Virus record (IMG/VR): IMGVR_UViG_3300029258_002750
Coordinates: 62,001-126,000 of that record
DNA length: 64,000 nucleotides
Reading direction: 5' to 3' (one strand)
The stretch's first letter is position 1, and the number at the start of each line of letters is the position of its first letter. Positions 35,208 to 61,020 of the stretch are shown in pieces. The position numbers and the translations under genes are program-made. The notes under the pieces were generated by a model that was given only the letters and a program-made list of their open reading frames with translations, made no database searches and was not told where the DNA came from.

Positions 35208-35462
35208 TCAGGCGGTGGCGGTCCGGTGAAGAACTCGGCTTCCTTCATTCGGCTTCCTCTTTCTCTCTAGCCGAGCGAGCTGGTCGATGGCCGAGACCAG
35301 TCGAACCCTGCCAGCCCAGCACTTCATCATCTTGGGCTCGCCAATGGCCGCGTCGTGAAGCCAGAACACGACCTCCTCCGTGAGCGGCCAGTAGCAGTAG
35401 ACCTTGCCGGTGCGGCCAGCGTAGCGGCCCTCGATGATGTGGATCTCGTCGCCCGGTTCCAT
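35208..35462 (-). CDS. KOW/SH3-like protein with C-terminal tag
   Basis: PGDEIHIIEGRYAGRTGKV; SAIDQLARL; leaderless promoter at 35469-35477. Confidence 0.6.
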   Translation of the reverse strand: MEPGDEIHIIEGRYAGRTGKVYCYWPLTEEVVFWLHDAAIGEPKMMKCWAGRVRLVSAIDQLARLERKRKPNEGSRVLHRTATA

Positions 35463-35471
35463 ACCCTAGTT

Positions 35472-36593
35472 CTACCCGTCGTCTTGGTCGTTCATCTCGA
35501 GCATCTTGGTCTCGGCGGGCGGGGCCAGGATCGGCCCGGCCGCCTCCCAGAGCGTCTTCTGGTCGAGGCTCTGCTGGCCGATGAACTGGATCGCGGCCGA
35601 CTCCATGATGCCAGTGATCTCCTCGCGCGCCTGGTCCACGGTGAACGCGGCGTTCGCGGCCGAGTGTTCGACGGCCCGTGCCACGCGCTCGGCGAACTCG
35701 CGGAGCTGGGTCTTGCGCGCGGGCTTGCCGCTCTCGGCCTGCGCCTCCAGCTCCTCGGCGATCTCGCGTAGCGCGTCGGCCTGCTCGCCCAGGCGGTGCT
35801 TGAGGCGCTTCTCCATGCGCGCGCGGATGGGCTCGGGCGGGCGAACGCGCTCGCGCAGGAGGACCGCGTCGTCGGTCACACTCCAGTAGGACGAAAGCGT
35901 GCACGGGGTGTGCGAGTTGCCGACCAGCGCCATTGCGAACTGCTCGGGGCTCATCGTGACCTCGCAGATGCGGCGGCCGTCCGGGTTCGTGATGGTGATG
36001 TGCACCACGGACGAGTGGTAGACCTTCGACCCGTTGAGCGCTTGACCGGGTGGCCCGGCCGACGCGATGCCGATGTAGATCGTGGACCGGCTCTTGTCGA
36101 TGTCGAAGTCGTCCGACTGCTTGTGAAGGCCGTCCTTGGCCGAGTCGATGGCGTCGGTGCCGGGGTGCGTCTTGGCGCGCGCCTCCTCGAAGATGCGCTC
36201 CTTCTCGCCTTTCGCGCCAGTCATCTTTCGGTGCGCGTGGATGGCCGCCGCGTAGTCGAGGATCTCCTCCTCGCTGATGAAGGACCCCTGATCGGCCATC
36301 CGCTTGAGGTGCGGCTTCGGCCGCTTGGAGAGGATCTCCTCCTTCTTGCGATCGTAGACGCGGCCTCTGCTCTCCTTGGAGAAGCCACCGTGCGAGACGA
36401 GGAAGCCGTCGCCGGGGATGTAGTGCGTCTCTCCGTGCGCTGGGCCACGGATGGTGAGCACGACGTCAGCGTGATCGTGCGTGTCGGGAATCTCGTCGGC
36501 GCCGGTGATGCCAGCTGGGTGGCGCTGGTCGTCGTCGAAGGTCTTGGACGGTACGCGCTGGACCTTCTTCTTCTTCCTCTTCTTGCGGCTCAT
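35472..36593 (-). CDS. Hypothetical 373-aa protein
   Basis: GGAGG-like RBS; stop codon is part of the downstream GGGTAGAAC promoter. Confidence 0.6.
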   Translation of the reverse strand: MSRKKRKKKKVQRVPSKTFDDDQRHPAGITGADEIPDTHDHADVVLTIRGPAHGETHYIPGDGFLVSHGGFSKESRGRVYDRKKEEILSKRPKPHLKRMADQGSFISEEEILDYAAAIHAHRKMTGAKGEKERIFEEARAKTHPGTDAIDSAKDGLHKQSDDFDIDKSRSTIYIGIASAGPPGQALNGSKVYHSSVVHITITNPDGRRICEVTMSPEQFAMALVGNSHTPCTLSSYWSVTDDAVLLRERVRPPEPIRARMEKRLKHRLGEQADALREIAEELEAQAESGKPARKTQLREFAERVARAVEHSAANAAFTVDQAREEITGIMESAAIQFIGQQSLDQKTLWEAAGPILAPPAETKMLEMNDQDDG

Positions 36594-36773
36594 GTTGCCC
36601 TCCCTAGCACGTGTAGAGGACGAACGACGGCTCGGTGTAGACGCGTTCGACCGGGTCGTTCGAGGGGTCGTAGCCCTCGATGAAGGTGCCCGCCTTGACC
36701 TGTTCTCGGAGCAGCTCGCGCGCCTGATCTTCGTTCTCGGCCAGGCAGGCGAATCCGTCCCATTCGTAGAGGT

Positions 36774-37175
36774 TCATCCGTCCCACTCCTCGTCGTCCTT
36801 GTCGGTGACGCCGCAGATCGGAAGCAGGTCGAGCTTGCGGGCCAGCTTGACGGCGAGCGCCAGCTCCTCGTCGACCGGCTGGACCCGGCCGTCGCCGAAG
36901 CGCAGGCCGCTCTTGTAGTCCTCGGGCTTGTCGCCGTAGCGCGCGATGACGGTCGGTAGCCGGTTGTCCTGCTTGTTGCAGAAGTACAGGTCGAAGAACT
37001 CGGACGGCTTGACGCCCATCTCGCGGTGCAGGTCGGCGATCGAGGGGCTCTCGATGTGGCGGGTCAGCGCTGACACGACCTTGTCGGTGACGAGGATCAT
37101 CTCGGAGCGCGTGATCTTCCCCAGGAAGACGCACTCGTCGCAGTCGTGGGTGAAGTGGGGATCGGGGTCGCTCAC
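36774..37175 (-). CDS. Phage protein with FTHDCDEC motif
   Basis: PHFTHDCDECVFLG...DLYFC...TVIARYGD pattern. Confidence 0.5.
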   Translation of the reverse strand: MSDPDPHFTHDCDECVFLGKITRSEMILVTDKVVSALTRHIESPSIADLHREMGVKPSEFFDLYFCNKQDNRLPTVIARYGDKPEDYKSGLRFGDGRVQPVDEELALAVKLARKLDLLPICGVTDKDDEEWDG

Positions 37176-37938
37176 TCGGTCTCCTCCTCGTGTCTGATCA
37201 CGTTGCCGAGTCTCGTGATCGCATCCGAGCACAGATCGTGGATGATCCTGAGCCGTCCACGCTCGAGGCTCGCTTCCTTGAGCGCCTTCGAGGCGGCCCG
37301 CTTTGAGCGAAAACTCTCGGGCAGTGCCTCGCCCTCGTAGCCGTCTTCGCCGTAGAGCCTGGCGATCCACCGGCCCTGGACCCTGGTGATTCGGCCGAGC
37401 CGCACGTTGATGCCGCTGTGTTTTCTGCCGAGCCACACCTGGCGGCCCCGGTTCCTGTAGGAGAACGGCAACTCGATCAGCTTGGCCCAGCCCTCGCTGT
37501 CCAATTCGATCGTGAGAGCTGAGATCCAGTAGGGAACACCGCGCAGCCAACGCCAGTCTGCGGCCGATTCCGGCCGCGTCAGCCAGAACTCGATGTCACC
37601 GAGCCTGCGCCAGAACCGCCAGCTCGTACCGGACACGGTCTCGGAGCCGTCTTCCCCGGTCACTGTGCGGCGGCCGTGCATCTCCGGGTAGCGGGACGAC
37701 CACCGGCCCCACCGATCGCTCTCGTCAGTCGCGCTGCGCTCGCGCTTGAACGAGATCTTGCACTCGACCTCCCACTCCGGGTCGGCCTTGATTGGGTAGC
37801 GAAGGAACGCCTCGAACCATTGCGTGTGCCAGCGAGAGTTGCTGCGCTCCTCGACGCCCTTCGTGTGGACGGTCCACCCGTGGCTGGCGGCGAGCTTGAT
37901 CATGCGCTCGGCACGGGTCGGCAGGCTAACGGTCGTCG

Positions 37939-38277
37939 TCACGCCGCCTCCTCTTCGTCGAGCAGCGAGCCCATCCGGGTGATGACGTCGATCTCCTTCG
38001 TGTATCCCTTGTCGCGCTTCTTGCCCTTCAGCTCCCGCGCGTGCTTCTTCGCCGAGAACCTGCTGTGGCGGATCTCGACCTTGATCTGGCCCCTCGTGCC
38101 GTACTTGCCCCAGCGCCGGACGACCTTCCACTGGCCGTCGTGCCTGAAGATCGCGACCTCCCAGTACTTGTCGCTTTTCCCGCTCTTGTTCGAGGCATTG
38201 GGTCCGAGGTACTCGAGGTAGCGGTGGTAGACCGGCTCGGGCCAGGTGTCGTAGGGACTGATGTCGGTGATCTTCAC
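37939..38277 (-). CDS. WGR domain protein with C-terminal tag
   Basis: SDKYWEV...VVRRWGKYGTRGQ...KKRDKGY; DVITRMGSLL. Confidence 0.8.
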   Translation of the reverse strand: MKITDISPYDTWPEPVYHRYLEYLGPNASNKSGKSDKYWEVAIFRHDGQWKVVRRWGKYGTRGQIKVEIRHSRFSAKKHARELKGKKRDKGYTKEIDVITRMGSLLDEEEAA

Positions 38278-38870
38278 TTGTCGTCCTCCCCGGTCCACAG
38301 CGGCCGACCGTCGCGGTCCACCTGGTTGTGCGGGCGGCGGCAGCGCGCCTCGCCCTGCCAGACGTTGTTGGCCGACTGCTTACGGACACCGGCCCAGACC
38401 CGGCCCGAGTAGCGCCGGATCCGTCGGCGGGTGTGTCCGTGTTGCGGCTTGCCCTTGATGCTCACGGTCCCCTCCTCTCCTAGTCCAGCAGGTCCACGTT
38501 GAAGCAGAGCTTGTCGATGTCGATCCAGTAGCCCGACCCGTCCACCTTGCAGCGCGTGCCATCGCGGGTGACGGCCACGACGTACTCCCAGCCGGTGAAC
38601 CGGGCGCGGCCCCGCCCCGGCATCTCGTTCTCGCAGCCCTTGCGCGGGAAGGCCGAGACCAGGAACGTGGCGCGGCGATCGGCCTGCCGGTGCAGGACCA
38701 TCGCGCGCAGACGCGGCCCGGACACGTAGTAGTTGCTGGACCGCTTGTAGTGCTGGACCTTGCCGTCGAACACGACGCGCACGCCGCCCTCGGCGGTAGC
38801 GCGGGAATAGCCTGCCTCGGTGATCGTCGGGAGTTGAATCGCTTGGGTCTGAGCCACGGTTGTCTTGCCT

Positions 38871-38978: not shown

Positions 38979-39530
38979 CTACCCGGGGTCGGCCAGTTCT
39001 CCGAGATGCTCGATGGCGCTCAGGAGATCGATCTCCCCCGGCTCCTCGCGACCGTCGCACAGGCGATCTGCGCAGTTGTTCCAGCGCGTGAAATCCGAGT
39101 TGTCGCGCTGATGTCCCGCGTGGTGGATGAATGACAGGAAGAGCCCGCGATCCTCGGCGATGGCCATCGCGTGTTCTATCTTGCCGCGCACCAGCTGATC
39201 TTTGATCTTCCAGTTGCCTGTCATCCAGGCCGCGATCCCGAGGTAGTCGGAGACGATGGTGACCTCGGTGTTCTCCGGTGCGCGAGCGAGTCCGAGGCAC
39301 AAGGCATCCAGCTCTGCACCAACGTTCCTCGTGCTCGTAGGCTTGTTGAAGCCCGCGTACTTCCTCGCGTAGGCGCGGGTGACAACCACGGCCCCGAAGC
39401 CGCCCTTCGAGCTGCCATCGGTGAAGACGTACGTCTTGTCGGCCATGCAGCGTCGGTCCTCTAGGAGAGAGACCCACTTGGCCTGGTGCGGAACGCGGGT
39501 GGTCTTGAGATTCGTGGAGTAGACGGTCAT
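38979..39530 (-). CDS. rnhA: Ribonuclease HI with C-terminal tag
   Basis: FTDGS, AEL.A, VSDY, HHAGH...WNNCAD; ends SAIEHLGELADPG. Confidence 0.85.
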   Translation of the reverse strand: MTVYSTNLKTTRVPHQAKWVSLLEDRRCMADKTYVFTDGSSKGGFGAVVVTRAYARKYAGFNKPTSTRNVGAELDALCLGLARAPENTEVTIVSDYLGIAAWMTGNWKIKDQLVRGKIEHAMAIAEDRGLFLSFIHHAGHQRDNSDFTRWNNCADRLCDGREEPGEIDLLSAIEHLGELADPG

Positions 39531-39973: not shown

Positions 39974-41167
39974 GGGGTCCTCTTTGGTGGGGGTGGTACT
40001 CCTTAGACCTTCGAGGGTGTCTCCCCTGTCAGTTCGACTGCACGTAGAGCAGCCACAACTCGTTTGTCCAGCGGCGCATCTTGAGCACGGCCGGGTGTTG
40101 CGTCGCCGGGCACGCCCGGTACATGGCCCAGGTCTCGGCCGCGATCTCGGGCGTCACCGGCTCGTGCGTCGCCGGGACCAGCTCGTGCCAGATCCAGGCG
40201 AGGAGCATCACGTGCTCCTCCTTGACGCTCGGCAGATCCCAGACCACGACGCTCACCTCACCTCCTAGCACTCTTCTCGGTACCTCGGTGCTCCCCAGCC
40301 CGGCCCGCGTCTGATCGCGGTGAAGTACGGCCAGTCGGGCGCGAGTTCGGCGAGGATCTGCTTGTCGATCTCGCGTCGCAGGTCAGTGCTGGCGGCCTCG
40401 ATCAGATCGCACTCGACCGACATCTACTGCCTCGTGTAGTCGTCGTGGTGCCCGTACGGCGATCCGTCTTCGCCAGCGAACACCCTCTCTCCGGTTTCCC
40501 GATTGACCAGGTAGCGTGTGCCAGGGCCGCCCTGGACACCAGGCACGCCGGTGCCTGGAACACTGGCCTCGCTCCCCCTCGGCTTGGCTGTGGCGATCGG
40601 CAGCTCGCCTTTGAGGTGCCGCACTCGGCCGCAGCCCTCCTCGTCCTCGCAGTCCGGTGTCGGGCCGTGCAGGTCGGGCACGCTGCCGCAGGTTCCGCAC
40701 GGCGCGCCGCTCGCGACCATCTCACTGTCAGCTGGGAGGGGCGCGGCCGGTGCGGCCGGAGGGGGTACCATGCCCGCCTGCTGCGCCTGGTACATGGCCG
40801 GAGAGACCATTGGAGCTGCGGGCGGTCCCTCGACCTCCTTACGCCAGCGAACCGAGAACACGATCTCCGCGTCGTCGGGGATGTCCTCGACCTTCTCTCG
40901 AGCGATCTTCTTCAGGTCGGTCGGCCCGATGACGCTCTCTGCGTTGCCTACGACGGCGCAGAGCTTGATGTCGCGCGGGTCGATCTCGGTCTCCTCGGGC
41001 AGCACGTCCTTGAGAAGATCGGCCAGCTCATCGCGGTTGAAGGTGATCAAGTGCTCCTCGACCGTCACCACCTTGCGCTTGCTCTCGTGCTTCATGTTGG
41101 GCATGGCTCCTACTTCCTTCTTCTCCTTCTACCTCAGATGGCCGACACAAGAGGTAGAACATCTTTC

Positions 41168-41443
41168 GTGAGAGATCCCGAGCGGATTCCGAGGATGCTG
41201 CGGAAAGTGTATCTCATCTGGAAGCGGTCCCCAGACTTACGACTGCTCCAGATGCTCTCGTGGATCGCCGAGAAGCCGCTGCCAGAGCAGGGCAGTTTGC
41301 CCAGGCGGTCGATCGCCGCGCGGTTCGTGGATGATGACCGACTGGAGCAGCAGCTCGATCGCGCTCTCCAAGATCGCTGTGTGATCGATGCGCTCGGTGA
41401 CTCGCTGGGGTTCGAGGATGCGGTGCTCCGAGATGACGGCTAG
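41168..41443 (+). CDS. DUF1040/YihD-like phage protein with tag
   Basis: MRDPERIPRML...WKRSPDLRLLQ; VIDALGDSL; GGTAGAAC-N7-GTG start. Confidence 0.6.
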   Translation: MRDPERIPRMLRKVYLIWKRSPDLRLLQMLSWIAEKPLPEQGSLPRRSIAARFVDDDRLEQQLDRALQDRCVIDALGDSLGFEDAVLRDDG

Positions 41444-42428
41444 CGTGGTCTGAGCGTCAGTGCGACGTTGGGGATCTCTCGCGAGAACGTGTCCACCTTC
41501 GGCGCTCCGACATCCAGCTGGCCTGTCGATGGCGGCGGCGGGCTGCTCTCCGGCTTCTTCTTGAGCGTCTTCAGCGCACGTCGCTTCAGCTTCACGCCAC
41601 ACCTCGCGCCGGGATGAAGAAGTCCTCGTCGCAGGCGAGCGGGTTGAACCGCAGATCGAGTTTGCCTCCGCCCCGCCTCTGCTCCTGCTCCTTCTTCCAC
41701 TTCGCCCATTCCGGGTTCTCGGCGACCGGCATGTCGCAGAGTTTCTTCATGGCCGCGCCCGCGACCTCGCCCTGGCGCCGCGCCTCTTTGGTTGCTGCCT
41801 CCATCTCGTCCCACGCATCGACCCACGCCTTCAGCTCCGGGTCGGCCAGTGCGCCGAGCCGATCGTGGACGGTCGGTTCGCGGAGCGGGCTTGGCGTCCG
41901 TCGCGGCGGCGGTGCGCAGACCTGCTTCTTCTTGAGGTCGCGCTTCACGCGACGAAGGAAATCATCGACCTCGGACATCTTGTCGTAGCCGAGACCGCGC
42001 AGCCGCTTGATGATCCGCTCTCGAATGCTGCTCATAGGTACTTCCTCTTGATCTTCTCTGCCGCCCGGTCGCGCGCCGTCTTGCCTGTGATCTTTACCTC
42101 CTTGGGCTTGGGCGGGTCTACGACGGCCGCGAGTCGGTCGACGGCGTGTGCGTTGAGGAATTCGAGGATCTCGGTCGCGAGCTTCCTAAACGCTCTGCCG
42201 TAGGTCTTTCCGTAACCACGGATGCGGAGTACGTGAGCGAGCCACTCAAGGCAGTCCTTGTCGGCCGAGTGAAGGTTCAAGAAAGCGCCCTCGTCGTCGC
42301 CCTCGAAGCTCTCGGCGATGCGATGCCAGATCTGCTGCTCGGGTTCGGTGCGACGCGAATGCGGCTTGCCGATGGTGCGGCGGATCCACATCATCACCTT
42401 CGACTCGATGTAGATCTTCGAGCTGACT

Positions 42429-42737
42429 CTACGTCTTCGGCCAGGCTGGGCTGATTTCATCCGCCATATCGTCGCGCGGGTCGTTGTGCTTGTAGGTAAC
42501 ACCGCCGACTGGCGCCGGGAACGAATCGCAGCGCGGGCAGTACGCGGCGTGCCAGGGCTCGTGGTAGTTCGGGCACCGGCGGCGGAACCGCTCGTAGTCT
42601 CGAACCGGATCGACCACTTGGGGCGAGACATTTGACGAGTCGCCGATCACGTCATAGACGCCCATGCCCAGGGTATGGAGCCCACCGGCCATCGTGGCCT
42701 CGGCGAGTGTCTTGAGCGGCCTGCGTCGGAGGTTCAT
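42429..42737 (-). CDS. Small protein with N-terminal MNLRRRPLKTLAE motif
   Basis: GGGTAGAAT-N6-ATG start; C-x-x-C motif. Confidence 0.55.
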   Translation of the reverse strand: MNLRRRPLKTLAEATMAGGLHTLGMGVYDVIGDSSNVSPQVVDPVRDYERFRRRCPNYHEPWHAAYCPRCDSFPAPVGGVTYKHNDPRDDMADEISPAWPKT

Positions 42738-43451
42738 GTCGAGATTCTACCCAAGCGGTTCGTGAGATCATCGCCGGTTCCGGCGTCGGGAGAGTTTCGC
42801 TAGCCAGTTGCGTCGTCGGCGTCGATGCTTCTCGCGTGGCGAGAGCGGCTGACGCTGCGGCATGTTCCTGAAGATGTCACCGAGCCTTGTGACCGCGTCG
42901 TCCGGCTCGGGATCGACGGGCTCGATGCACGTGCTTGCGCTGCTTGTGCTGCTTGTGAGGATCGTACCGCTGGCGGCGGTCCACTCGAGATCCTCTGCCT
43001 CGTGGTAGGTAATCACGCCACTCGGCATCGCCTCTGGGTTTTCGATGTAGAGCATCGCCTCCGCTGCCTTCTACCTCCAGGTCTAGCACTACCGTGCTGG
43101 CAGTGCTCGCGCTCTCCACCATCGTCCACGTGATCAGGCCGTTCGGGCAGTTCGTGTGGTGCCGCTGGCAGCGATCGGGGCCGTGGTCCATGCAGCCTTC
43201 GCAGCGGTGCAGGTCGGCGAGCGCATCGACGGCCGAGTAGGGCTTCACCGCGCGGGGAGTGCGGTAGACGAGGCGGCCCGTGGCCAGCTTGACGCCGTAT
43301 CCCCATTCGTCGTCTTTATCGGTGACGACTTCGCCTCGGATCCACACGACGCGCTCTAGGGCTTCTGTCTCGGAGATGCCGAGCGCCCAGGCGGTGTGCA
43401 TGACCGCTTCTAGGGACTCGCGGGTGACGAGGACGCGGTCGCCGCGCTTGA

Positions 43452-43742
43452 TCACGGAGAGCCGATGACCTCGATCTCGTCCGGCGGGATCACGAGGTTG
43501 AGCGCGCGCGGCCCATCCCAGCTGACGGTGACGTGGTGCGTGTCGTCGTGCGGCCACTTGATGCACTGGAGTACGGTGCCCTCGGCGCCGGGCTCCATCG
43601 GGCACGGGTCCTCGCCCATCTTGACCAGGCGGATGCGGGTTCCGACGGGCAGGTTCACGCGGCCTCCTCGTGCTTCATTTACCTTGTAGACCGCCTGCCG
43701 GATCACGGGAGTCCCAGCTTCTTGTTCCGGCAGCTGTCGCAC
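43452..43742 (-). CDS. DUF4314 family protein
   Basis: GTRIRLVKMGEDPCP..PGAEGTV....HVTVSWDG..ALNLVIPPDEIEV. Confidence 0.7.
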   Translation of the reverse strand: MRQLPEQEAGTPVIRQAVYKVNEARGGRVNLPVGTRIRLVKMGEDPCPMEPGAEGTVLQCIKWPHDDTHHVTVSWDGPRALNLVIPPDEIEVIGSP

Positions 43743-46631: not shown

Positions 46632-46640
46632 GAGCGTCGC

Positions 46641-49448: not shown

Positions 49449-49829
49449 TCATCGAGCCAGCTTGCTGGTGGCCGGTTGGACTACGATCGAGCCACGCTTG
49501 GTTTTACCCAGCTTCACCAGCCCGGCCTCTGCCATGACCTCGACGTACACCGTGGTGACGGCGATGGTGGTGTTGAACATCCGCTCCCGGTTGATCCGCT
49601 GGACGGTGCGCGGGCCGACCTCGTCCAGGTAGCTCAACAGATCATCGACGACAGTCCCATCCAGGCGCACGCCCTTTGCGCCGACCTTCTTGACCCGCTT
49701 GATCTCGTTCTCGCGGGCGGCCAGCTCGGCAACGATTCCCGCGACGTAGGAGTGATGCTCCACGTGCTCCGGGCAGTACGGCTTGTTCTCCCGGGTCGTC
49801 TCCTCGCAGCCCGGAAACTCGCAGATCAT
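49449..49829 (-). CDS. Zn-finger plus winged-helix protein
   Basis: CEFPGC...YCPEH; wHTH-like C-terminus ending EAGLVKL; GGGTAAAAC-N6-ATG start. Confidence 0.5.
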   Translation of the reverse strand: MICEFPGCEETTRENKPYCPEHVEHHSYVAGIVAELAARENEIKRVKKVGAKGVRLDGTVVDDLLSYLDEVGPRTVQRINRERMFNTTIAVTTVYVEVMAEAGLVKLGKTKRGSIVVQPATSKLAR

Positions 49830-52800
49830 GTTTCCGTTTTACCCGGTTGAACCGACTCGCGTCCCGGTGCTTCTGGCGATGTCGGCGAGCCGATCGACGG
49901 CCGATCTTTCCCGAACGGTCACATCGTAGGCGGGCAAGGTGCGATTGTCCCAGTCGACCGTCCACTTGTAGGCCGCTGGGTCCAGTTGCGCGTGGTCGCG
50001 GCAGTAGCGATCGACGGCCGCCTCGATCTGCTCACGCTCCTCGCGGCTGCCGTGTCTGGCGATGTAGTTATCGACCGCGATGCCCCGCGCGATCTGCAAG
50101 CAGTTCTGGCGGATCTCTTCGAGCGTCCAGGGGCTACTCACGTGGTGCTCCGCACGGCGGGTGGCAGAGCGGGAAGCACTGGCAGCGGCGGCGGAATCTC
50201 TTGCGGCCGACCTCGGCGAGCCGGTCGACGACCGATAGCTCGGAGAACTCGGTCACGACCTTGAGCTTCCTTCGCAGTGAACGCTTGGTGATGTCTCGCC
50301 GCTTGCGGCCAAACACCCCCGGCTTCCCGACCGCCTCGAGCACCTCTTTCAGGTCTTCTACCTGTTCGGCCGAGAGTTTCCGCAGGTTGATGGTCATGGG
50401 GATGTAGAGGCTGGCGTACACGAGAGCGGCCAGCTCTGTCTTCCCCAGCTCCTTCGCACGGTGCCAGACGACCCACGTCTGCCGCTCGGTCAGTCGGATC
50501 GACCACTTAGCCATCGGCCAGGTCCGCCAGCTGATCCACAGCCGACCGTTCCGCGAAGCTGAGGCTGATCCTGTTCCGGTCCGGTAGGACCGTGCAGTGG
50601 ACCTCGTAGCGCCTGCGGATTTTCGGCAGCATCATCTCGATCGCCTGCTCGACCGCCTCGTGCACCTTGTCGATCAACTCGTGGCTGATGTTCTCGAACA
50701 TGAACGCGCGGAGGGTCGTCTCGACGGCCGAGAAGATCTCCTCGGGAGGGTAGGGCATCTCGGGACCGGCGTTCGTCAGATGGATGTTGATCCAGTCACT
50801 CACTGGCCGTCTTCCCCACCAGTGCGAGCAGGTCCACGATGTTGATCGCCTGCACATCCACATCGCTGGCTGTCGTGAGGATCGGCGGATTCTTGACGCC
50901 CATCGCCATGAAGAACTGCATCAGCTCCTCGCCGATCGCGTTGACAGTGTCCGGCTCGTAGCGGTCCGGGTCGAACTGGACCCACAGGACCATGCCCGGC
51001 TTCCACTCGATCGTGGTGAGTTGCCGCACCGGCTCCCGGAGCATCGCATTCCGCTCGGCCTGCTCCAGGTGCCGCATCCAACGGCGGTTCCACAGGAAGA
51101 CGATGAGCATCATCACGCCCGTGCAGCCGATCACCACATACGTACAGATGGTCATCGGGCTACGACCAGGTACCTTACCAGGTCGCCCAGCCTGTCGATC
51201 GCTGACAGCTTCTTCAGCCGGTCGATGTGCACATCTTCGAGCTGTCGGCCGTCGTCCATCTCGACCAGCCATTTCTCGAGGTTGGGCTCGTCCGAACCGC
51301 GCCTGAGCAGCGGGTGTGAGACGAGCGTTCCCCGCTCGCAGTCGAGGAGCACCCGGTCTCCGGCCGACCAGCCGTGGGCCGACTCGCGGCGGCGGCGCAC
51401 GTAGCGGAGCCACTTCCACGTCGGCCAGACGCCGAACACGGCCGCAGCAAAGCCCATCGCCCAGAACTCCCAGTTGCTCCACCAGTGGCCGAGTAGCCAC
51501 TTCTCGAGGGTCGATAGGGCGAAGATGATCAACATGCTCAGGTCGATGATGAGCGCGATTCGGGTCCAGAATCCCATGCTTACGTTCTACCCGGCCAGCT
51601 CGCCCAGTCGCTCGACCGCGCTCGTGTTGTTGTAGTCGTGGACCGCCTCTGCGAGCAGGTTGAAGTCCCAGCCCGGCGACCAGCGGTGCAACCACCGGAA
51701 GAACGCGGCGATCTCGATCAGCTCTTTGGGCGAGAAGACCCAGACCCGGCTCATGTTGATCGCGTGACCGCCGCGCAGGTCTTCGAGTAGCCTCTCGACA
51801 CCGGGCACGACGACCTCGGGTGGCGTGTAGTAGTGCTCCTCCCGGAGGATCACACTCCGCTGGGCATCGGTAAGCGCCAGCATGTGCGGCGCCAGCAGCT
51901 CGCGCGCCTGCTCTTCGGTCATGTCAGCTGGGTCGAGCGGCATCGTATAGCTCCCCCAGCCGAACCACGGCCGACCTCGGTCGGATCCAGTGGGCCGAGA
52001 GCATCTGCGGATCGTGCGGCGGCCGGTCCTCGCCCTCCTCCAGCACGTAATCCAGGTAGTAGAAGATGGTCTGGCCGTAGGCCCCATAGCGCGCGACGTG
52101 TGTGACCCGGCAGAGGTAGCGCAGGGACGGATCGTCCTTGCGCGGGTGCAGCCAGACTGGATCGCCCTCCGCGAACTCTGGCTCGGGGACCTCGAACGTG
52201 GGCGGGCTGAACGTCATCCCGGCGTGCTTCTCGGGATTGCAGCGGTTGCAGTTACAGATCACGCTCGGCTATCTCCCCCAGACGTTCTACCGCGCTCCTC
52301 TCCTCGTAGAGCTTCCATCTCGCCTTGTGCAGTCCGCCGATGTGGTCGTGGCCTGGTCCGTGTTCCGTGGCCTTGACCCGTCCGGTACGCGAGTCCCACA
52401 CCTGGTTCCACGGGATGATCTTCTGGCAGGGTTGACCGGGCTCGGCCATGCAGCGCGGGCAGCGGTGCTGCTTCGCGCGCTCGTGCCTGAGCCTGCGCAG
52501 CTCATTCGCGTCCGGCACGCTCGGACAATCTTCCCAGGGTGCTGATGATCTCGACCTCACGCAGATCGCACTCGGCTACCTGGATTCGCACGCCGTTGAT
52601 CTCAGTTCCGTACCAGAACCGGAACCGATCGGTGAAGGCAAACCAGACGTCGTCGATCTTGGTGACGAGCACCTTGTTCGCTCCCTTGTGCTCCGCGTAG
52701 TCGCCGATCTTGAAGCGGCTCTTCGGCGCCTCGTGGCCAGGCAGGCACGTGCACGTGTCGCGACCGTTGTGGATGAGCCGTTGTCGGCCCAGGTAGCAGA

Positions 52801-52841
52801 TCTCTCCCGGACAGTCTTCGCAGAGGAACAGGACGAACTCG

Positions 52842-53093
52842 TCAGCCATCGAGCCGCTCCCGGCCGCGCTTCTTCTTGAGCTTCGCCTCCACTCGCTGCG
52901 CCTCGCTGCGCGAGCCCAGGGGTCCGTGCACGCGCGCGAGCTTCCAGGGCCGACCTACTCGTGTCGCCTTCGCGCCCCCCGGCCGGGAACCATTGTGCTC
53001 TTCCAGTCTCCGGTCGACGTTCACGCACGAGCCGACGTACGTCCGCGATGAGTCGGCGCTGACCAAGACATAGACGAACCAGGCTTCACTCAT
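52842..53093 (-). CDS. GIY-YIG nuclease (SLX1/UPF0213-like)
   Basis: FVYVL...TYVG..VDRRLEEHNG..GGAKATR.GRPW...SEAQRVE. Confidence 0.88.
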   Translation of the reverse strand: MSEAWFVYVLVSADSSRTYVGSCVNVDRRLEEHNGSRPGGAKATRVGRPWKLARVHGPLGSRSEAQRVEAKLKKKRGRERLDG

Positions 53094-56000
53094 CGGCCAG
53101 TTCCGCGAGCATGTCCACGGCGCTTGGCGCGCAACGGTCGCAGCACCAAGAATTGCGCAGGATCCATCCTCGCCGCCGCGCGGCGTCGAGCAGTCGGGCT
53201 ACCGCATCATGGAACGCGCCTTCTTCCTCCGGGTAGTCGTAGAACTCCGATAGGCCGAGCCGCGCCAAGCACTTACGGCACTCGATCATTGGCTGGACCT
53301 GGTGACTGCTACTCACGAACCAGATCCCCCAGTTGATCGACAGCGGGCGCGGGCCGGATGTAGTTGAAGTTGCCTGGTGCGTAGCCGACCTTGTGGTGCT
53401 TCTCTCCCGTCTCGACGATGCGGAAGTCGAACTTGCTGCCGTTGATTCGGAGGATGATGGCCTTGTGCCACGTGTCGCTGAAGTCTCGCTTCGCTCGGTC
53501 CCACAACCGGACCTCGATGCTGTCGCCCGGCCGGTAGAAGACGCCCTTGTTCTTCTTCCGCGCTTGCGCGTGCCGCCACTTCTTCCGCTTACCCATACGT
53601 CAGCTCCCCGAGCCGCGTGATCGCGTCGTCGCAGGGACGAAGGGACGTCACGTGGTAGGAGCGCGATCGACCGTGGCGGCGCGGCTGGTTCGGGTAGATC
53701 CACCGGACGAAGACGCGTTGAGGGTCCTTGCGCTCGTAGCGTTGGACGACCCCGTGTTGGTGACGGTGCCGCATCGCGACCGTGTTGATGATCACGCGCT
53801 CGCCGACCTCCGGCCTCCACCTATCCACTGAGGAACTCCATCAGGATTGCGGCCAGCACGACGCCTGCCACGACGCCCCACAGGAACGCTTTCGTTCGCC
53901 CGCGCGCGTACCCCGCGTTGTAGGCGGCCGGGTGCTTCGCCTGAAGGTGCCAGTGCACCTGGTCGATAGCCTGGGTCGGCCAGAACAGGAAGCAGCCGCG
54001 CGGCTTGAACTCGGGCAGGTCTTCGATCTCCTTCTTGTAGTCTTCCTGTGGATCGTTCACAGGAGATCCTCTGCGAGCGAGCCGAGCGCGTCGATGGCTT
54101 TGCCGTCTTCGATGAGTTTGTCGCGATAGCGCAGCTTCGCCTGTATCTCGCTGATCATCCGCGTGAAGCGCGCCGCCGAGGCCGCCGAGAGCCCACACAG
54201 ATTGAGACAGATGTGCGTGTCGCTGTCCTCCGGCAGCGAGAGTTGGGCGTTGCACTCGGGGCAGCGCCACCGGGAGAGCGCGCCGTCGAGAAGCAGCACG
54301 TCGCTCATCTCGTCGTCCCAGCGCGCGGGCTTCATGTTGACGTGGGGGACGCCTCCGATCGTGCAGTAGCCGATGATCATCGGTCGGTCTCCCATCCCAT
54401 CAGCGGCTCCCACTCTTGGGTCCGGTAGTCCACGAGCCATTTGCAGCCGTAGCAGATGATGAAGAAGCTGCCGACGCGATCCGTTTCGCCCTCGTGCTTG
54501 CACTCCCGGAAGCGCGCGAGACTCTCCTCGAACTTCCCGAGGTTCGCCAGCGTGTCGATCGCGCTGCTCTTCGTGTTCTTCGCCCTGGCGCGCCAGTAGT
54601 CCTCGCCGCTCTTGATCGTGTCGTGTTCAGCCATCGCTCTCGTCCTCTTCCGCGTCCTCGAGCACGCGCGCGATGTCGCCCAGGAGCGTGATCGTGTCCA
54701 TCTTCATGAGGAACTGCGGGCCGAGCATCGTGGTCTTCCCGCGCTGTGGGCCGGTCGTCCAGCGAACGTGGACCGACCAGCAGCCGCCGTACTTGGAGCA
54801 CGACTCGACGCGGGCCGTGAACCGGCCCGCCTCACCGCCGTCGCCGTCGCCCATCGCGACGCGGAAGGTCTGGCCCTTCTTGAACGGTGGATTGTCGCCG
54901 TAGATGAGCGCGCGCCGAGCTGCCTCGTCGTCGCGAGCTTTCTCAACCTCGCGCTTCATCCGCTTCAGCACGGCGTCCGGGTCGTCGCTGGAGCTGTGCC
55001 TATACACAGATCCCCTCCGCATCGAAGAACTCGTTGTGCGCGCCCAGCCAGCTGAGGTGGTTGGTCGTGGTCGCGAAGCCCATGCACCAGCCGTTCGGCG
55101 GAACGGACGGGTGCCTGGCATCGCCTGTGTGCTTGCCGTGCTCGTAGGTCAGGCGGCGGCACTTCCCCCAGTTGGAGCACGAGCCGGGGATGAAGCTGAT
55201 GCAGGTCCGACAGGTCGGCAGCACGCGGAACTTGGCGTCTCGCAGAGCTTGGAGCTTGTTCGGATCAGGCATCGTCGTCTTCCAGCAGCGTCACGTCGTC
55301 AGCCCAGAACCAGCCGATGTCGCCCTCGTCCTCGGAGAACCTGACGAGGTACATCTTGTCGGTCGAGTTGTAGTCAACGACGTCGCCGACGACGGCAACG
55401 CCGTCCATCTCGACGCGCACTCGCCCTCTCATGGGTCACCAGTCCTGCTAGCTGCTCGATCGCACCGGCCAGCTCGACGTTGCAGATGCCCTTGTCGATC
55501 TTCTGCCTGCCGACGCGCACGCGGCAGAAGTACCATGGCTCCTCCCCTACCAGGAAGAACTCGAAGATCCGACCGCGCAGTCGGCTTCCGCCCAGCGTCT
55601 CGAACTCGACCAGGGACCCGATGCTGAGGCCCCGGCTCTCCTTGATCAGCGCGACCTCGGAAGAGTCGGCGGAGAGCTTGATGCGGCGGGGTTGCTTCAT
55701 GCTCCCGTTCTTCATGCTCCCGTTCTACCCGGGATCGGCGACGATCTCTCCGAGCAGTTCCACGGCCGAGAGCGGCTCGATCTCGAACTGCGTGACCCAG
55801 AACCGGACCGCCTCGCCGTCGAGAACGACGTCGGAACGGATGTAGTAGGCCGGGCTGCTCCCGTCGCTCCATCGGTGAGGGTCGATGGCCTCGATGGTCC
55901 CTCGCCTCGGCCCGTCCTCAATGTGGTAGATCACCCGGTCGCCGATCCTCACAGCAGTGCCCCGAGCCGCGTGACCGCGTCGGCCTCGACCCAGTAGTCG

Positions 56001-57910
56001 TCCAAACTGACGAACGTCTGGATCTTCAGCCGCAAGTCCCGCGCGATCCACCACAAGGTCTCGTCGCATATCGCGTCTGGATCTCTCCCGCCGTGGTACT
56101 GGCCGAAGCACTCCTCGACCGTAGCCGGGCGCGTCAGTTGGACGAGTCTGCGGCCGGTTCCCACGAGCAGCAGTCCTGGTTCCGGCTCGATCACGCGGCC
56201 ACCAGACTACCCAGCTGATCGACCGCGTCGAGCGCCTCGACCGCGCGCACGTCCACGAACGTGCAGACCTCCATCAGGTCGTCGTCCCAGGCAATGTCGA
56301 GGGAGCGGGGCCGCTTGTCCTTGTCCCACGAGCGGATGCACTTGATCGTTCCTGCGCGCGCGAGACCCCGGGTCGTGCGAACACGGACGCCTGTCGCGAG
56401 CGCGAGCTTCATCGCTGGCTCGCGATCAGCCGGATCAAACTGTTGGTCAGCCACTCGAATTCGGTCTGGCCGCTCTCCATCCACTGCTTGGCCACGCGGC
56501 GTATCTCGTTGCAGCGCGCCTGGGCCTGCGAGAACTCGCCGGGGTCGGACGCGCGGCCGACGATGTTCGCGGCCTGCTGCTTGTGCGCGGCCACGTGGTG
56601 GCCGATGCACGCGGGAGTGATTTGGACCGAGTCCCAGAAGAGCCCCCACGTGAGCTGATCGACTCCCGGCTCGGTCGGCATGGCCCAGACCTCGGGCGCG
56701 ACCAGGAGCATGGTGAGTCGAATGTCCAGCTCGCGGTTCTTCATCACTATCGTTCTACCCCGCCTGGCTATCTGTCCATCTCGTAGAGAGAAAGGGTGAG
56801 CAGCTCGAAGCCCTCCTCGAGCCGGTCGTACTCGGTGCGCCGATCCTCGCGGAACTCCTCCTCGACCTCCCTCCAGGCTGCCAGGAGGCCCGGGTCGACC
56901 ACGGGAAGGGCCGTCAGGCCGCCGGAGAGCGTCTCAGGCGAACGATCGTCGGCCGGATGGGTAACGAGACCTCGCTCGATCAAACCGGCCGTCTCCGGGG
57001 CCGAGAGGAGCTTGTCGAACCTCCGGGGGTCCGGGGGCGGGCTCCTATCGAGCCGGAAGGGCCGACCGATCAGGGCCAGGTCGTTGCGGGACAAGGCGTC
57101 TCGCAGGTCCAGCTCGCGCAAGTCGTTGATTCCCAGGATGTTCACTTCTGCCTCCTCGCCAGGTCTGCCATCAGGTCGATGGCGGTGTTCTCTCTCAGAA
57201 TGAGGCCCGGGAGCCACCCGGTCGCGCTCGGGCAGTCGGGGTCTCGGACCTCGATAAGACCGTCGCCCACTTCGCCCGTGCCGCGCAGCACCAGGCCCGC
57301 AGACCAATAGGGCGGGTCGAGGGCCGGGTCTCCATCTTCGGCCCACCAGTCGGCGGTCAGGGTGTAGTCGGTCACGCTACTCCGCCGTCGAGACGTAGTG
57401 GGGAGCGAGCAGGTCGCGCGCGGCGTCGAAGAGAAACCGGGTCGCGGCGAGCCGCGTCTCCGGCGTGGCCGACTCCTTGGAGCCGGACGGGTACTTGACC
57501 GAGCGGTACTCCTCGTATCGCTCGGGCGCGGCGGCCCTCAGCAGCGAGCGGAACTGCTCGCGGGCCTGGGCGCAGATCACCGCGCCGACCGTGATCGGCT
57601 GGATTCCGTCATCGGTGATCTTGTCGTTGACGATTTGGTTCAGATCGAACTGGCTCATGGGTTCCCTTCCTAGCGCAGCACCACAACGCTGCGCGTGCTC
57701 TCGAAGTCGTCCTCCCTGACCTCTTCCTCGACCACGACATCGCAGCCGAAGTAGTCGGACCGGCCGACCTGCTCCACCGACACGCTGCGCACCTCGGGCG
57801 CGATCGTGGTGTGGCAGTAGTCCCGCGCGTCGTGTCCGAAGTGGATCGTGGCGTCGGCGGGCATTGTCTTGAGCAGGTTGATCAGTTCGTTGCGGGTCAT
57901 GGTTGTCTCC

Positions 57911-58492: not shown

Positions 58493-58516
58493 GTTGGGTT
58501 ACGGAAGAAGTCGGCC

Positions 58517-58640
58517 GGATCTTTCGGCTCTATCCAGTAACGAAGCGGGGCGAGAAAGCCTTAGAGGCTCCCTCGCCCTGTCTGCCTCGTCCGCCCGGAT
58601 CTCTTGCCTCATACCCAGTAACGAATCGGCGTGAGGAAGT
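58517..58640. repeat. About 42-bp imperfect direct repeat, period about 80 bp, intergenic
   Basis: ggatct...ccagtaacgaa...gagaaag / ggatct...ccagtaacgaa...gaggaag. Confidence 0.6.
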
Positions 58641-58666
58641 CTTACGGCTCGGCCGGAATTTTCTTC

Positions 58667-59314
58667 TTAGCGCCTACCGCAGCAGCGCTTGTGCTTCTTG
58701 CCGCTGCCGCACCAGCAGGGGTCGTTGCGGCCGATCTTGTTGAAGCCGCGCCGGAAGGTGCGAACCGTGCGGAAGAACCTCTCGGCGTGCCCCTCCGATG
58801 CCATCGCCTGCTGCCAGCCGAGCGAGGTGAGCGAGAGCCGAGCGTGGAACGACCGGAACGACTCGGAGTGGCCCTCGGTCGGTGACAGCTCGTTGATGGT
58901 CTCGACGACGTTCTTGTCCTCGTGAGCGTGAAGCGCGCGCGCGAGGGCCAGGTCGAGCGCGATCATCGCCGGTGCGTCGGTCTCCACCATCGTGTTCGGC
59001 TGCTCGCCATCCTTGACCACCACGAGCGCGGCGGCGAGCGCGCGCGTGCTGTCGAGCGATGGCGGAGTCCGCTTGACGGGCTGCGTGAAGTGACCCTCTA
59101 TGCGGCGGTGCCGGTCCGGGTCACCGCAGACGTCGTCGATCTCACGCACGGCCGACTCGATCGCGGTCGGGTGCAGCTCTAGTATGGTCTCCAGAACCTC
59201 GGCCGCGAGCCGGTCGATCTCGACATAGAAGCTCTTCGTGTCGCAGTGGAAGCCGTGGCGAGCCGCGTTACGGATCAGCGCTTTGACATCGTCGCTTGGC
59301 TCTTCGTAGGCCAT
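58667..59314 (-). CDS. SEC-C motif protein
   Basis: KIGRNDPCWCGSGKKHKRCCG. Confidence 0.85.
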   Translation of the reverse strand: MAYEEPSDDVKALIRNAARHGFHCDTKSFYVEIDRLAAEVLETILELHPTAIESAVREIDDVCGDPDRHRRIEGHFTQPVKRTPPSLDSTRALAAALVVVKDGEQPNTMVETDAPAMIALDLALARALHAHEDKNVVETINELSPTEGHSESFRSFHARLSLTSLGWQQAMASEGHAERFFRTVRTFRRGFNKIGRNDPCWCGSGKKHKRCCGRR

Positions 59315-61020
59315 GCCCTTGTTCTACCTGTCCTTCACCTCCATCCTCCTGGCTACGTTGGCGAGTCGGTCGATCGCGGTCACGCCAGCTGACTCGGACA
59401 GGGCATCGACGCGGTGACGAAACTGATTCGCCAGCCGCTTGTCTCCTCGGCGTCGCGCCCAGCTCTCCGCTCGCTTGCACAGCTCGCGCAGCCGCTTGAA
59501 GCGCGGCAGGTCGAAGCTGACCATGTTCACGTGGTCGGGCGAGAGCTTCACTGCCCACCCGTTCATGTTCTTGGCGCCGAACGCGAGCGCGCGGTGCACG
59601 GCCCATACGGGGTTCACGACATTCAGCTCGTGGTTCTTGCCAACGATCTTCGGGTTCCAGTCCTTAGCGATCTGGTACGTCTCGCGGTCGAGGTGGAGCA
59701 GGATCACACAGTGGCGCTGAGTGAGGGTTGTAGTACGCGGTGGTGTGGGGGTGCCCATCGCTCACTTCCGGTTAGTGGCGATGGTCTCTCTCAGCTCTGG
59801 TAGCCCGATCTTTGGCGGGTCGACGGTCGCGTGATACTCAAGAAGCGCCAGGCACAAGGATACGAGGCCGGTGGCGATCTCGTCCTCGTCGGCCATTCGT
59901 CCGCCGATAGTGCCCAGTTGGTTGCGGAGCGCGTTGATCTCGCGGCGATTCCCTTCGTCGAGTTTCACGAGGCACTTTGTCGAGTGATCGAGCGGCTTGC
60001 CGACGCGCTCGACCTTGCCGCCCTTGGCCCATCGTCGCCACGTTGCCAGGGAGCACTTGCGCTCGTGCCGACCGTTTTGAACCGAGTAGACGACCGTTCC
60101 CAGGGCCGTCACGTACTCGACGCAGCGCTCGTTCTTGCCCACCCGCACGACATCGAGGAGCTGCGGGGTCACACGAGGGTCGCGGTCGGGCATGGTTACC
60201 TCCGACCGCGTTTCTACCTCAATCTACCGACACATCCCCCACTTCTTCCCAGACGAGCGCGCCGAGCCGATCGACGGCGCTAAGTGACGCCGCGAAGGCG
60301 GCTCGGAGCGCTTCCCAGGCGGCCTCCCGTCGCTTGGGTCGCCTGATCCTGCCATCCCACAGGTCGGCGCCGACATCGAATCTCGGCTCCTCGGACCGGC
60401 GCTTCACGTTGATCGCGACGTGGGGGAGTACGATCCGGGCGATACCCGCGCTGGTGGGCTTGTTGTTCAAGTAGGTCCAGCTGTGCCAGACGACCGTGGT
60501 TCCGTGTGGGTCGGCGACCGCGACTGCGAGCTGCGTCCAGTAGGCGGTGGCCTCGTAACGCTGCCTGCTGGATGTTCGCGAACAGGCGGCCAGCGCCGAC
60601 CACTTCCGGTTGCGCTTGATCTTCTTCCCTCGCTTCTTCTGTGCCCGCTGGCCGAGCTTCATCGGGTCGAACCGATCGCACTCGGCGATCCTGTGTGCCG
60701 ACCGGGAGCCCGGCCCGCTCGTGCGTTGGTCCGGCGGCGTGTCGAGGTAGATGACCTTGATCATGCCAGCTCCCCCAGCTTGTCGATCACGTTCTTCGGC
60801 TCGACCGGCTCCCAGTTCTTCCAGTTGCCGAACTCGGCCTCCTCGCGAGTCGTGGAGAACAGCGCGTCATGCCCGACCGCCGAACGAGTCCGGCACCAGC
60901 GCACGGCATGGCGCGCGGTCTCCCACGAGCCGCGAACGAAGTAGTAGTTCCACGTCCCGTAAGCCTTGGTGCGTCGGATGACCAGGCCGATCCTGCTCTC
61001 GGCTAGCGCCTCGTCCAGCG

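Follow-up and report, generated by a model that had tools for sequence, protein, structure and literature searches.

The internal proteins of phage T4 are otherwise unrelated and share only a capsid targeting sequence (CTS), which takes them to a common destination (PMC3012670, PMC9026906); this CTS comprises the first 10 residues, is cut by the prohead protease after Glu and is found on a handful of proteins (PMC3012670, PMC9026906). Polymerases, nucleases and many further DNA enzymes carry the bacterial beta-clamp motif or the PCNA PIP-box, by which they bind to a hub in a single hydrophobic pocket (PMC11139829), and for nucleus-forming phages no linear import signal was found (PMC11087766). 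Here we report on a ten-residue helix, hereafter the tag, that recurs mostly near the C-termini of proteins encoded in a 64,000-nucleotide stretch of the IMG/VR virus record IMGVR_UViG_3300029258_002750. This stretch, hereafter the window, corresponds to bases 62,001-126,000 of one contig of 275,101 bp with 65% G+C; the record has direct terminal repeats and an estimated completeness of 100%, and its source is a complete, uncultured T4-like jumbo phage of 275,101 bp. An earlier note on the same DNA had described a set of SH3/Tudor/KOW-like barrels ending in a shared helix and had proposed that they deliver host proteins to a common effector.

A constant helix on variable proteins

The tag follows the pattern [S/D]-A-[V/I]-[D/E/T]-x-L-[G/A]-x-[L/V/I] and takes up ten residues. 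In a consensus of 114 copies, Pro was frequent at positions -3/-2 and position -1 was occupied by Ser (50 copies) or Asp (31), followed by Ala at position 1 (85), Val (69) or Ile (45) at position 2 and Asp (57), Glu (24), Thr (15) or Ser (12) at position 3. Arg (47) and Gln (22) led at position 4, Leu (107) at position 5 and Gly (64) or Ala (48) at position 6; position 7 was variable, with Asp or Glu in approximately 42% of copies and Ala, Arg, Ser and Asn common, and the motif closed with Leu (66), Val (24) or Ile (21) at position 8 and Ala (39) or Val (24) at position 9. An acidic or proline-rich tail often follows. Such a consensus reads as a putative N-capped amphipathic helix, in which Ser or Asp would serve as the N-cap, Asp, Glu or Thr at position 3 as the capping-box acid, and A1, V/I2, L5, L/V/I8 and A/V9 would form the hydrophobic face, while the residue at position 6 would have to be small (Gly or Ala).

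In the window, the loose protein pattern was matched by 38 copies on the minus strand and three on the plus strand; the tag copies occur in all three frames, each in frame with an open reading frame (ORF) rich in G+C at third codon positions. Genome-wide, 150 loose matches were counted against 24 in a reversed-genome control, and for matches no further than 12 amino acids (aa) from a stop codon the figures were 84 and three. The tagged ORFs with G+C-rich third positions numbered 110 in the whole genome (38 in the window), 62 of them with the tag at most 12 aa and 82 at most 35 aa from the stop, the distance between tag and stop ranging from one to more than 100 codons. The helix that the earlier note had seen to be common to its ORFs is real, and is wider than was noted, since it extends to these 110 ORFs, among them the DNA polymerase and other nucleic-acid enzymes.

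Third codon positions in the tag vary, both codon families (CGN and AGR) are used for Arg and likewise both (TCN and AGY) for the preceding Ser, and the likeness between DNA copies is no more than about 70%. In 15-16 orthologue pairs from relatives with 78-92% nucleotide identity, the tag was 81% identical against 65% for the remaining protein, and S-1, D3 and L5 were unchanged in 15 of 15 pairs. Furthermore, each helix column of the paralogue alignment holds approximately 3.0 bits of information, as against approximately 1.5 bits for the barrel strands. Judged by its codons and orthologues, the tag is selected at the protein level. The ratio of nonsynonymous to synonymous substitutions (dN/dS) of tagged genes was 0.24-0.55, not above that of untagged neighbours, which gives no gene-wide sign of an arms race; the carriers, which are soluble proteins (one of 92 has a membrane segment) whose median length is about 108 residues, are by this measure real genes under moderate purifying selection.

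What the tag is attached to is, on the other hand, highly variable. After masking of the tag, almost no pairwise BLAST similarity was left between the 110 carriers; recent paralogy was rejected as their origin, the all-against-all comparison having returned only three tiny clusters. Searches of 87 tagged ORFs against Pfam recovered only WGR, RNase_H (with overlapping RVT_3), SNase and Phage_zn_bind_8, to which PHROGs added only 'endonuclease' and 'RNase H'. In the RNase H and WGR carriers the tag lies outside the Pfam domain. The former (38979-39530; this and all window genes below are on the minus strand unless stated otherwise) consists of RNase H at aa 32-157 (Pfam E 1.1e-7) and the tag AIEHLGEL at aa 171-178 of 183, which reads AVEHLGEL in a 79%-identical orthologue; the latter (37939-38298) consists of WGR at aa 35-101 (Pfam E 1.1e-12) and the tag VITRMGSL at aa 104-111 of 119, identical in 10 of 10 residues in its orthologue.

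Two perfect copies are found in the family-A DNA polymerase (genome positions 40799-43639; 799-3636 on contig L068), both within 35-45-residue insertions of the 3'-5' exonuclease domain as compared with RNase D-like exonucleases, and internal copies are also present in a helicase and an ATPase. It should be added that the same polymerase has an apparent mini-intein (C-V-S-G ... H-N-S, approximately aa 476-611) and a Cys-rich insertion. The pyrimidine-dimer DNA glycosylase of the window (34195-34533) has no tag, whereas that of the approximately 80%-identical relative (L185/L198) carries a perfect ERSAIDQLADL; the tag thus differs between close relatives, its gain or loss being a matter of short time scales. 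In sum, the tag is a constant, portable module on highly variable bodies.

Among the matches listed from pattern scans of IMG/VR and metagenome contigs, the tag occurs in bulk only in this phage clade, other single matches being mostly internal helices of unrelated proteins. Such bulk occurrence is seen in close relatives from sister samples, and related contigs include IMG/VR 3300017963_000254, 3300017963_000293 and 3300017971_000201 and Logan SRR15505513; in a more distant IMG/VR contig of 120 kb (3300033153_010718) nearly every small ORF ends with V-R-P-L-S-A-V-E-x-L-A-E-L-A-stop. When 1.84 billion representative proteins were searched exhaustively with a profile, 1366 matches were returned at E ≤1e-3; this group comprises new barrel-and-tag proteins of 70-155 residues, some of them with two modules (P0023, P0037 and P0064), a tag-rich phage fragment (Logan contig L286) and long proteins of tandem SH3-like barrels. 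The tag is present in several related phage lineages. The tag profile matched PDB sequences only in chance internal helices (E ≥0.08), and full-text literature searches for tag variants and for C-terminal motifs of jumbo phages yielded neither a description of the motif nor anything like it for phages.

SH3-like barrels in front of the helix

In tagged ORFs the string G[DE]x[VI] was counted 26 times, shuffled sequences giving 9.7 ± 3.4, and it stands 48-67 residues before the helix in 23 of the 26 cases; this spacing marks out one domain of fixed length. A family profile built on barrel and helix has 63 full-length members in the genome, as well as two loci of a relative. The barrel measures approximately 60 residues, after which the helix follows, and a complete SH3-like barrel precedes the tag in about half of the carriers. 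Paralogues are 14-34% identical in the barrel alignment, which, together with the nearly empty BLAST comparison of tag-masked proteins, bears out the statement of the earlier note that the bodies are otherwise highly divergent.

AlphaFold models were obtained for two of the proteins, both from paralogue alignments. They show five strands and a C-terminal helix and match Tudor, PWWP and KOW domains, in line with the SH3/Tudor/KOW fold that had been guessed from the strand pattern. The model of 53589-53828 (predicted local distance difference test, pLDDT, 84.5) has its helix at residues 69-78 as the least confident part (pLDDT ~61). It matched Agenet, Tudor, PWWP and KOW structures with a Foldseek probability of 1.00, a template modelling score (TM) of 0.55-0.65 and VIA-align Z of 7-8.4 (Z ~8 with the Tudor domains of PHF1/TDRD3), and alignments that took in the helix had a root mean square deviation (rmsd) of 5-6.5 Å.

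In the model of 35208-35462 (pLDDT 90) the helix spans residues 58-69, and residues 1-56 could be aligned by VIA-align with NusG/Spt5 KOW domains (18-32% identical) to an rmsd of 0.9-1.0 Å, the Z score reaching 10.8. These KOW domains stop where the helix begins, so that the helix comes on top of a fold already complete; a helix packed into the barrel core, which the earlier note had named as speaking against its own proposal, is not what this protein has, its residues 58-69 lying outside the KOW fold. The same protein reached 18.0 bits (E 0.0025) with Pfam KOW (PF00467), for which the gathering cut-off is 22.3, and no other barrel matched Pfam KOW. Structural neighbours in the ESM Atlas were KOW, DUF2158, DUF4926 and Agenet, and one relative matches Pfam Agenet at E 5.5e-5. 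On the strength of the models, the barrels belong to the five-stranded SH3-like superfold (KOW/Tudor/Agenet/PWWP) of about 55-65 residues. An alignment of 38 sequences has as conserved columns G9, D/E10, V12, G26 and V28, in addition to the helix; no aromatic cage of the kind used by Tudor/Agenet/PWWP readers is conserved in it, a general aromatic preference being seen at position 6 only.

All 13 ORFs that had been listed for their x-x-G-D-x-V strings are present, on the minus strand, and in 12 of them a second-round profile detected the barrel over its full or nearly full length; the thirteenth, 52502-52849, gave no detectable barrel and carries a degenerate tag, IISTLGRL (52526-52549), its orthologue on contig L090 being 73% identical with dN/dS 0.48. 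Among the 12 are the protein at 35208-35462 (profile E 2.5e-16), in which the KOW-type barrel at aa 1-56 is followed by the tag AIDQLARL (35268-35291) and a tail of 19 aa, and that at 47561-47890 (E 1.3e-17), with the string EIGDRVLY and the tag AVDQLAEV (47582-47605), for which the L090 orthologue has AVDRLGEI. The adjoining 47887-48132 (E 2.6e-12) combines RVGDRVVI with AIDALGNI (47947-47970) and an acidic/Pro tail.

Further barrels with tags are encoded at 53309-53596 (Lys/Arg-rich N-terminus, RPGDSIEV, tag AVDQLGDL at 53321-53344; E 3e-12), at 53589-53828 (EVGERVII, tag AITRLGEL at 53601-53624; the modelled protein with the structural matches given above), at 55725-56021 (RIGDRVIY, tag AVELLGEI at 55743-55766; E 1.4e-14) and at 56191-56412 (ATGVRVRT, tag AVDQLGSL at 56203-56226; E 3.1e-8). 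Outside the earlier list, the C-terminal, barrel-like part of 60219-60764 (E 1.4e-10) precedes the tag AVDRLGAL (60255-60278). Profile matches were weak, with E about 1e-4, for three ORFs, namely 43703-44263 (QPGDRVDF; E 1.9e-4), 55374-55715 (SIGSLVEF, tag AIEQLAGL at 55440-55463 and an Arg-rich tail; E 1.7e-4) and 54627-55121 (tag TITLLGDI at 54672-54695 and an acidic tail; E 1.6e-4), the last of which had not been listed before.

The earlier description of barrels that open the ORF and helices that close it holds for many of these proteins, with exceptions at both ends. The ORF at 51152-51577 (SAGDRVLL, tag AIDRLGDL at 51179-51202; E 5e-14) opens with a membrane segment and is the sole carrier of a hydrophobic segment among 92, whereas 51924-52262 (AEGDPVWL, tag AVVRLGEL at 51948-51971; E 1e-14) and 52502-52849 open with Cys-rich stretches. 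The tag lies at most 8 aa from the stop in nine of the 13 ORFs and at most 21 aa in 11; the remaining two run on beyond it, 42877-43464 (KRGDRVLV, internal tag AVDALADL at 43210-43233; E 2.5e-11) with a Cys/His-rich extension of 110 aa and 43703-44263 (tag SVSRLGDV at 43859-43882) with a Zn-ribbon-like tail that reaches 51 residues past the tag.

A proposed docking helix and its alternatives

We favour, with moderate confidence, the reading of the tag as a docking helix that binds one common partner in trans. The hydrophobic face of the helix would plug into a groove of one hub protein, whereby about a hundred otherwise unrelated phage proteins would be given a single address, and the barrels and other bodies would supply the activity proper to each carrier. 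Docking in trans is favoured because the helix is the most conserved part of the proteins, stands after complete unrelated folds or in enzyme loops, recurs in approximately 110 ORFs and has been kept by selection in several lineages. All tagged proteins with a recognisable domain act on nucleic acids (RNase H, the SNase-type nuclease, WGR, the phage Zn finger, the family-A polymerase, the helicase and the KOW/Tudor-like barrels), and for this reason the partner may sit at phage DNA replication, repair or transcription. We infer the binding in trans, the single partner and its location from these patterns, our best guess for the address being the site of phage DNA replication/repair or transcription.

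A number of observations weigh against this reading. The bias towards nucleic acids rests on about seven proteins, approximately 95% of carriers having no recognisable domain. Only one or two residues separate the last strand of the barrel from the helix, and in the model of 35208-35462 the helix has a pLDDT of 86-96, so that it may lie on its own barrel rather than be free; moreover, a barrel-only profile found no barrels without a helix. On contig L285 (JGI Ga0393277_0001030, 8001-12997), two adjoining genes of 795 and 870 aa encode about ten barrel modules each, every module consisting of a barrel, an S/T-P-L-E-E-L-A-x-L-G helix and a K-K-N-P linker, and such tandem arrays would suit a structural or inter-module role no less than multivalent docking. 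About a hundred proteins competing for one site would also be unusual for a phage. No common partner or host target was found; a complex prediction of the clamp (two copies) with the tagged barrel 53312-53596 scored 0.00 without controls and is evidence neither way. It should be added that the genes around the tandem-barrel pair on L285 had no Pfam match, and that these arrays, together with the matches of the exhaustive search, indicate a barrel-and-helix unit older and wider than this phage.

A more far-reaching proposal, which we put forward only tentatively, is that the tag could be a sorting signal on about a third of the proteins, gathering them at one phage-made structure or hub such as a replication factory; it would then be the first proteome-wide targeting code in a phage, and the barrels a library of small delivered effectors.

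Rather unlikely, in our estimate, is a helix with no external partner, that is, a stabilising C-terminal cap or a self-association element whose copies on other domains would be fusion remnants aiding folding or solubility. Chromoshadow domains do dimerise via a C-terminal helix, and the lack of a linker after the last strand, the high pLDDT of the helix in 35208-35462, its presence with each detectable barrel and after every barrel of the tandem arrays, and the two-module proteins P0023, P0037 and P0064 all suit such a role. The same residues (A1, L5, G/A6 and L8), however, would not be expected of a cap across KOW, RNase H, WGR and an exonuclease loop; its conservation is double that of the barrel core, the KOW domain of the NusG type is complete and stable without it, and in the 53589-53828 model the helix is the part with a pLDDT of ~61, the alignments that take it in having an rmsd of 5-6.5 Å.

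The proposal of the earlier note, in which barrels seize host proteins, for instance those of defence, and the helix passes them on to one common effector (a protease or a modifying enzyme, for example), is a special case of docking, and in this specific form we consider it improbable. It draws on the combination of a variable body with a constant helix, on a barrel fold that is a common scaffold for binding proteins and peptides, and on the candidate remodelling machines encoded by the phage, two MoxR-type AAA+ ATPases with VWA partners. Against it, the helix is also borne by enzymes which are no adaptors (RNase H, the nuclease) and is twice inserted in the phage DNA polymerase; amino-acid change is not raised in tagged genes relative to neighbouring ones (dN/dS 0.24-0.55), and the analysis turned up no effector.

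It is very unlikely that the tag is a counterpart of the CTS, loading its carriers into the prohead and/or being cut by a T4 gp21-like protease after L-x-E/D. Prohead proteases cleave after L/I-x-E, a rule which L-G/A-E/D in the tag resembles, and the phage has both a gp23-like capsid protein and a prohead protease; yet position 7 is Asp or Glu in only approximately 42% of copies, about 100 cargo species would be far above those of any known capsid, the tag is borne by the replicative polymerase, by a helicase and by a membrane protein, and a better CTS-like candidate exists in the genome, the N-terminal M-S-L-Y-E-R-V-L-G-E on eight larger proteins.

Hardly tenable is a nucleic-acid-level element (ribosome binding or coupling, a promoter, a recombination or methylation site) with the peptide as its by-product, since, for all that L-G-E/D is often written in G-rich, Shine-Dalgarno-like strings 7-13 nt before the next start (where the tag is 1-3 codons from the stop) and that GATC occurs in 53 of 114 tags, with GAT used before C in 71% of cases against 40% genome-wide, the tag always keeps to the frame of its carrier across three genomic frames, leaves its third positions free and draws Ser and Arg each from both codon families, stands 1 to >100 codons from the stop, has Ala (GCN) at position 6 in 42% of copies and coexists with a separate, sharper start-associated DNA box (GGTAGAAC-N6-ATG), and GATC is 3.2-fold over-represented in the entire genome, not in tags alone; codon variation, the ~70% likeness of the DNA copies and this general GATC excess led us to reject any such DNA- or RNA-level element.

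Most genes of large phages are small ORFans without a handle for study, and the tag ties approximately 110 of them to a polymerase, RNase H and nucleases. Were the tag a docking helix and its single receiver found, a third of the phage proteome would be placed in one pathway; if true, this would add an example of short linear motifs in phages, and a portable tag might be used to direct foreign proteins in infected cells. As a resource, the genome would offer >45 minimal KOW/Tudor-like barrels with very different surfaces.

Genomic setting and comparison with known systems

The phage sequence was also recovered as a 275,080-bp contig of a JGI metagenome, and was present in sediment and seawater runs of 2018 and 2021; no RNA run was shown to contain it, in a search that was general and not aimed at RNA. 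The phages collection had no nucleotide match and no match for the 738-aa protein. The structural genes comprise portal, prohead protease, a T4 gp23-like major head protein (26-31% identical to T4-type capsids), tail sheath, tape measure and baseplate wedge, and those of replication type a DnaN-like clamp, a DnaB-like helicase, a primase, a RecA-like protein and the family-A DNA polymerase. Further genes encode two DNA methyltransferases, a sigma factor and two MoxR-type AAA+/VWA pairs, in which one partner is a VWA/metallopeptidase-like protein and the other a CobT-like VWA protein. None of the large ORFs that were scanned was recognised as a phage-encoded RNA polymerase; no search was aimed at chimallin or PhuZ. 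The class II ribonucleotide reductase has its nearest relatives in Myxococcota genomes (55-57% identity), which by sequence affinity is only a hint of the host.

The genome has 36 tRNA genes and a transfer-messenger RNA (tmRNA) gene. A block of 35 tRNA genes at genome 6.5-16.7 kb includes the tmRNA (tag ANAPVRLAA) and is adjoined by a TROVE/Ro-like 'RNA-binding protein' (phrog_850; genome 17340-19016), while an Rfam search of the window found no RNA family. GATC was observed 2805 times in the genome against 887 expected by base composition (3.2-fold over), GAT being favoured over GAC before C, and at least two DNA methyltransferases are encoded by this GATC-rich phage.

Between 33 and 64 kb the window is densely packed with small minus-strand genes, nearly all of them without a database match, and is probably an early gene block. 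Apart from the carriers described above, it includes ORFans recognised by the tag pattern at 37172-37900 (AITRLGNV, 37199-37222), 49120-49452 (VIDQLAAI, 49177-49200), 50507-50863 (AVDQLADL, 50519-50542), 54057-54503 (AIDALGSL, 54075-54098), 59324-59758 (AIDRLANV, 59354-59377), 60761-61192 (VIDKLGEL, 60767-60790) and 61757-62044 (AVDRLGDI, 61766-61789). The ORFan at 34530-34940 (dN/dS 0.34) has AVDHLAAI six residues from the stop, and for that at 55949-56194 the distance of AVTRLGAL (55955-55978) to the stop is one residue. A helical ORFan is found at 49839-50141 (AVDRLADI, 49878-49901), one with a Cys-rich tail at 50134-50514 (VVDRLAEV, 50209-50232), a Cys/His-rich one at 52252-52560 (AVERLGEI, 52270-52293), a small Cys-rich ORF at 53086-53300 (AVDMLAEL, 53098-53121) and a Cys-rich ORFan at 62399-62713 (AIDRLASV, 62414-62437), all likewise by tag pattern.

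In one more such ORFan, 51587-52087 (AVERLGEL, 51596-51619), the stop codon lies within a start-associated DNA box, GGTAGAAC, which occurs in 62 copies against approximately 6 expected, at about 60 sites genome-wide (e.g. window 51590, 55728, 59327, 35475 and 39543). Its consensus is CCSGGGTAGAAC-N6-ATG; of 32 boxes with an ORF of ≥40 aa, 25 have the ATG at a distance of exactly 6 nt on the downstream side. The box is oriented with the downstream gene, with several back-to-back divergent pairs, and its TAG is often the stop of the upstream gene, which accounts for the tails, -AG* and -DPG* among them, that follow tags. The box probably acts as a phage promoter (-10-like) that yields leaderless mRNAs, or else as a signal for the start of translation, and has no special tie to tagged genes, 10 of the 32 downstream ORFs being tagged. 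Inside the minus-strand block, a plus-strand ORF of 91 aa behind such a box (41168-41443) ends with the tag-like C-V-I-D-A-L-G-D-S; the opposite-strand match AAIDRLGKL at 41293 belongs to an ORF without a start codon and is probably not real.

Other short peptides recur as well. The motif (M/V)-S-L-[YF]-[DE]-R-[VLI] stands in eight plus-strand proteins, mostly as their first residues (window 17474, 30718, 31665, 32813, 45840 and 46644; genome 150588 and 208924), the copy at 32813 being 184 residues past the preceding in-frame stop. Its fullest form, M-S-L-Y-E-R-V-L-G-E, has Tyr at position 4, hydrophobic residues at 7-8, a small one at 9 and Glu at 10; in the 10-residue CTS of T4, residues 4 and 7 govern targeting and residues 8 and 10 cleavage (PMC9026906). 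By this analogy, the proteins in question may be the internal (ejected) proteins of the phage. The peptide R-[RK]-P-L-K-T-[LA] is shared by six proteins (window 788, 10153, 18548 and 42725 (-); genome 179839 and 185194). Finally, a SEC-C zinc motif (Pfam E 3.7e-9) ends several proteins with unrelated N-terminal parts (window 58667-59314, 61021-61614 and 63552-63956; L286 1710-2069); three of the motif DNAs are 70-72% alike, and these proteins form a second set of variable bodies with a constant C-terminus in the same block.

Among viral systems, the CTS of the T4 internal proteins is the nearest parallel to the tag, both being a short peptide on unrelated proteins of a T4-type phage. In contrast to the CTS, the tag is C-terminal or internal, has no fixed acidic position for cleavage and is carried by approximately 110 ORFs, replication enzymes included. 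The chimalliviruses are jumbo phages too and sort their own proteins to a DNA compartment, the phage nucleus, whereas the phage described here is T4-like and has a clear linear motif.

The nearest mechanistic parallels are the clamp/PCNA motifs, SspB-type peptides and the peptides of microcompartments and encapsulins. Clamp-binding motifs are, like the tag, short and often C-terminal or placed in loops, and the phage has its own DnaN-like clamp; the tag does not, however, conform to QL[SD]LF or QLxLxL, since its position 4 is Gln in no more than 19% of copies and lacks an aromatic residue after it, and it is a predicted alpha-helix of about ten residues whose carriers are mostly tiny ORFans. 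F-box, SOCS and PRANC are helical domains of 40-50 residues with known partners such as Skp1 or Elongin BC, and SspB has a C-terminal ClpX-binding peptide after a long flexible linker. These share with the tagged proteins a variable recognition body joined to a constant recruitment element, and the comparison with F-box, SOCS-box and PRANC proteins drawn in the earlier note is an analogy at the level of architecture; it does not extend to the element itself, since the tag is a helix of 10 residues instead of a box of 40-50, abuts the last strand and sits on enzymes too, and Pfam recognised no such box in the 87 tagged ORFs.

Microcompartment encapsulation peptides, which are amphipathic helices, and encapsulin cargo peptides, which bind in extended form, steer diverse enzymes to one assembly. 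They are short and mostly terminal like the tag and have no sequence similarity to it, and no shell or encapsulin gene was recognised in the phage. An ssrA-like degron would have L-A-A-COOH at the free C-terminus, whereas between tag and C-terminus there are 1 to >100 residues, the polymerase has its tags in its interior, and the terminal residues vary. The barrels, for their part, have the same five-stranded SH3-like fold as KOW of NusG/Spt5 and as Tudor, Agenet and PWWP domains; they differ from those of the royal family in that they stand alone, have an extra C-terminal helix and conserve no aromatic cage. The tag has the defining sequence features of none of the clamp motif, the CTS, the F-box/SOCS/PRANC boxes and the ssrA degron, and we rate it as a shared docking or targeting peptide on an unusual scale.

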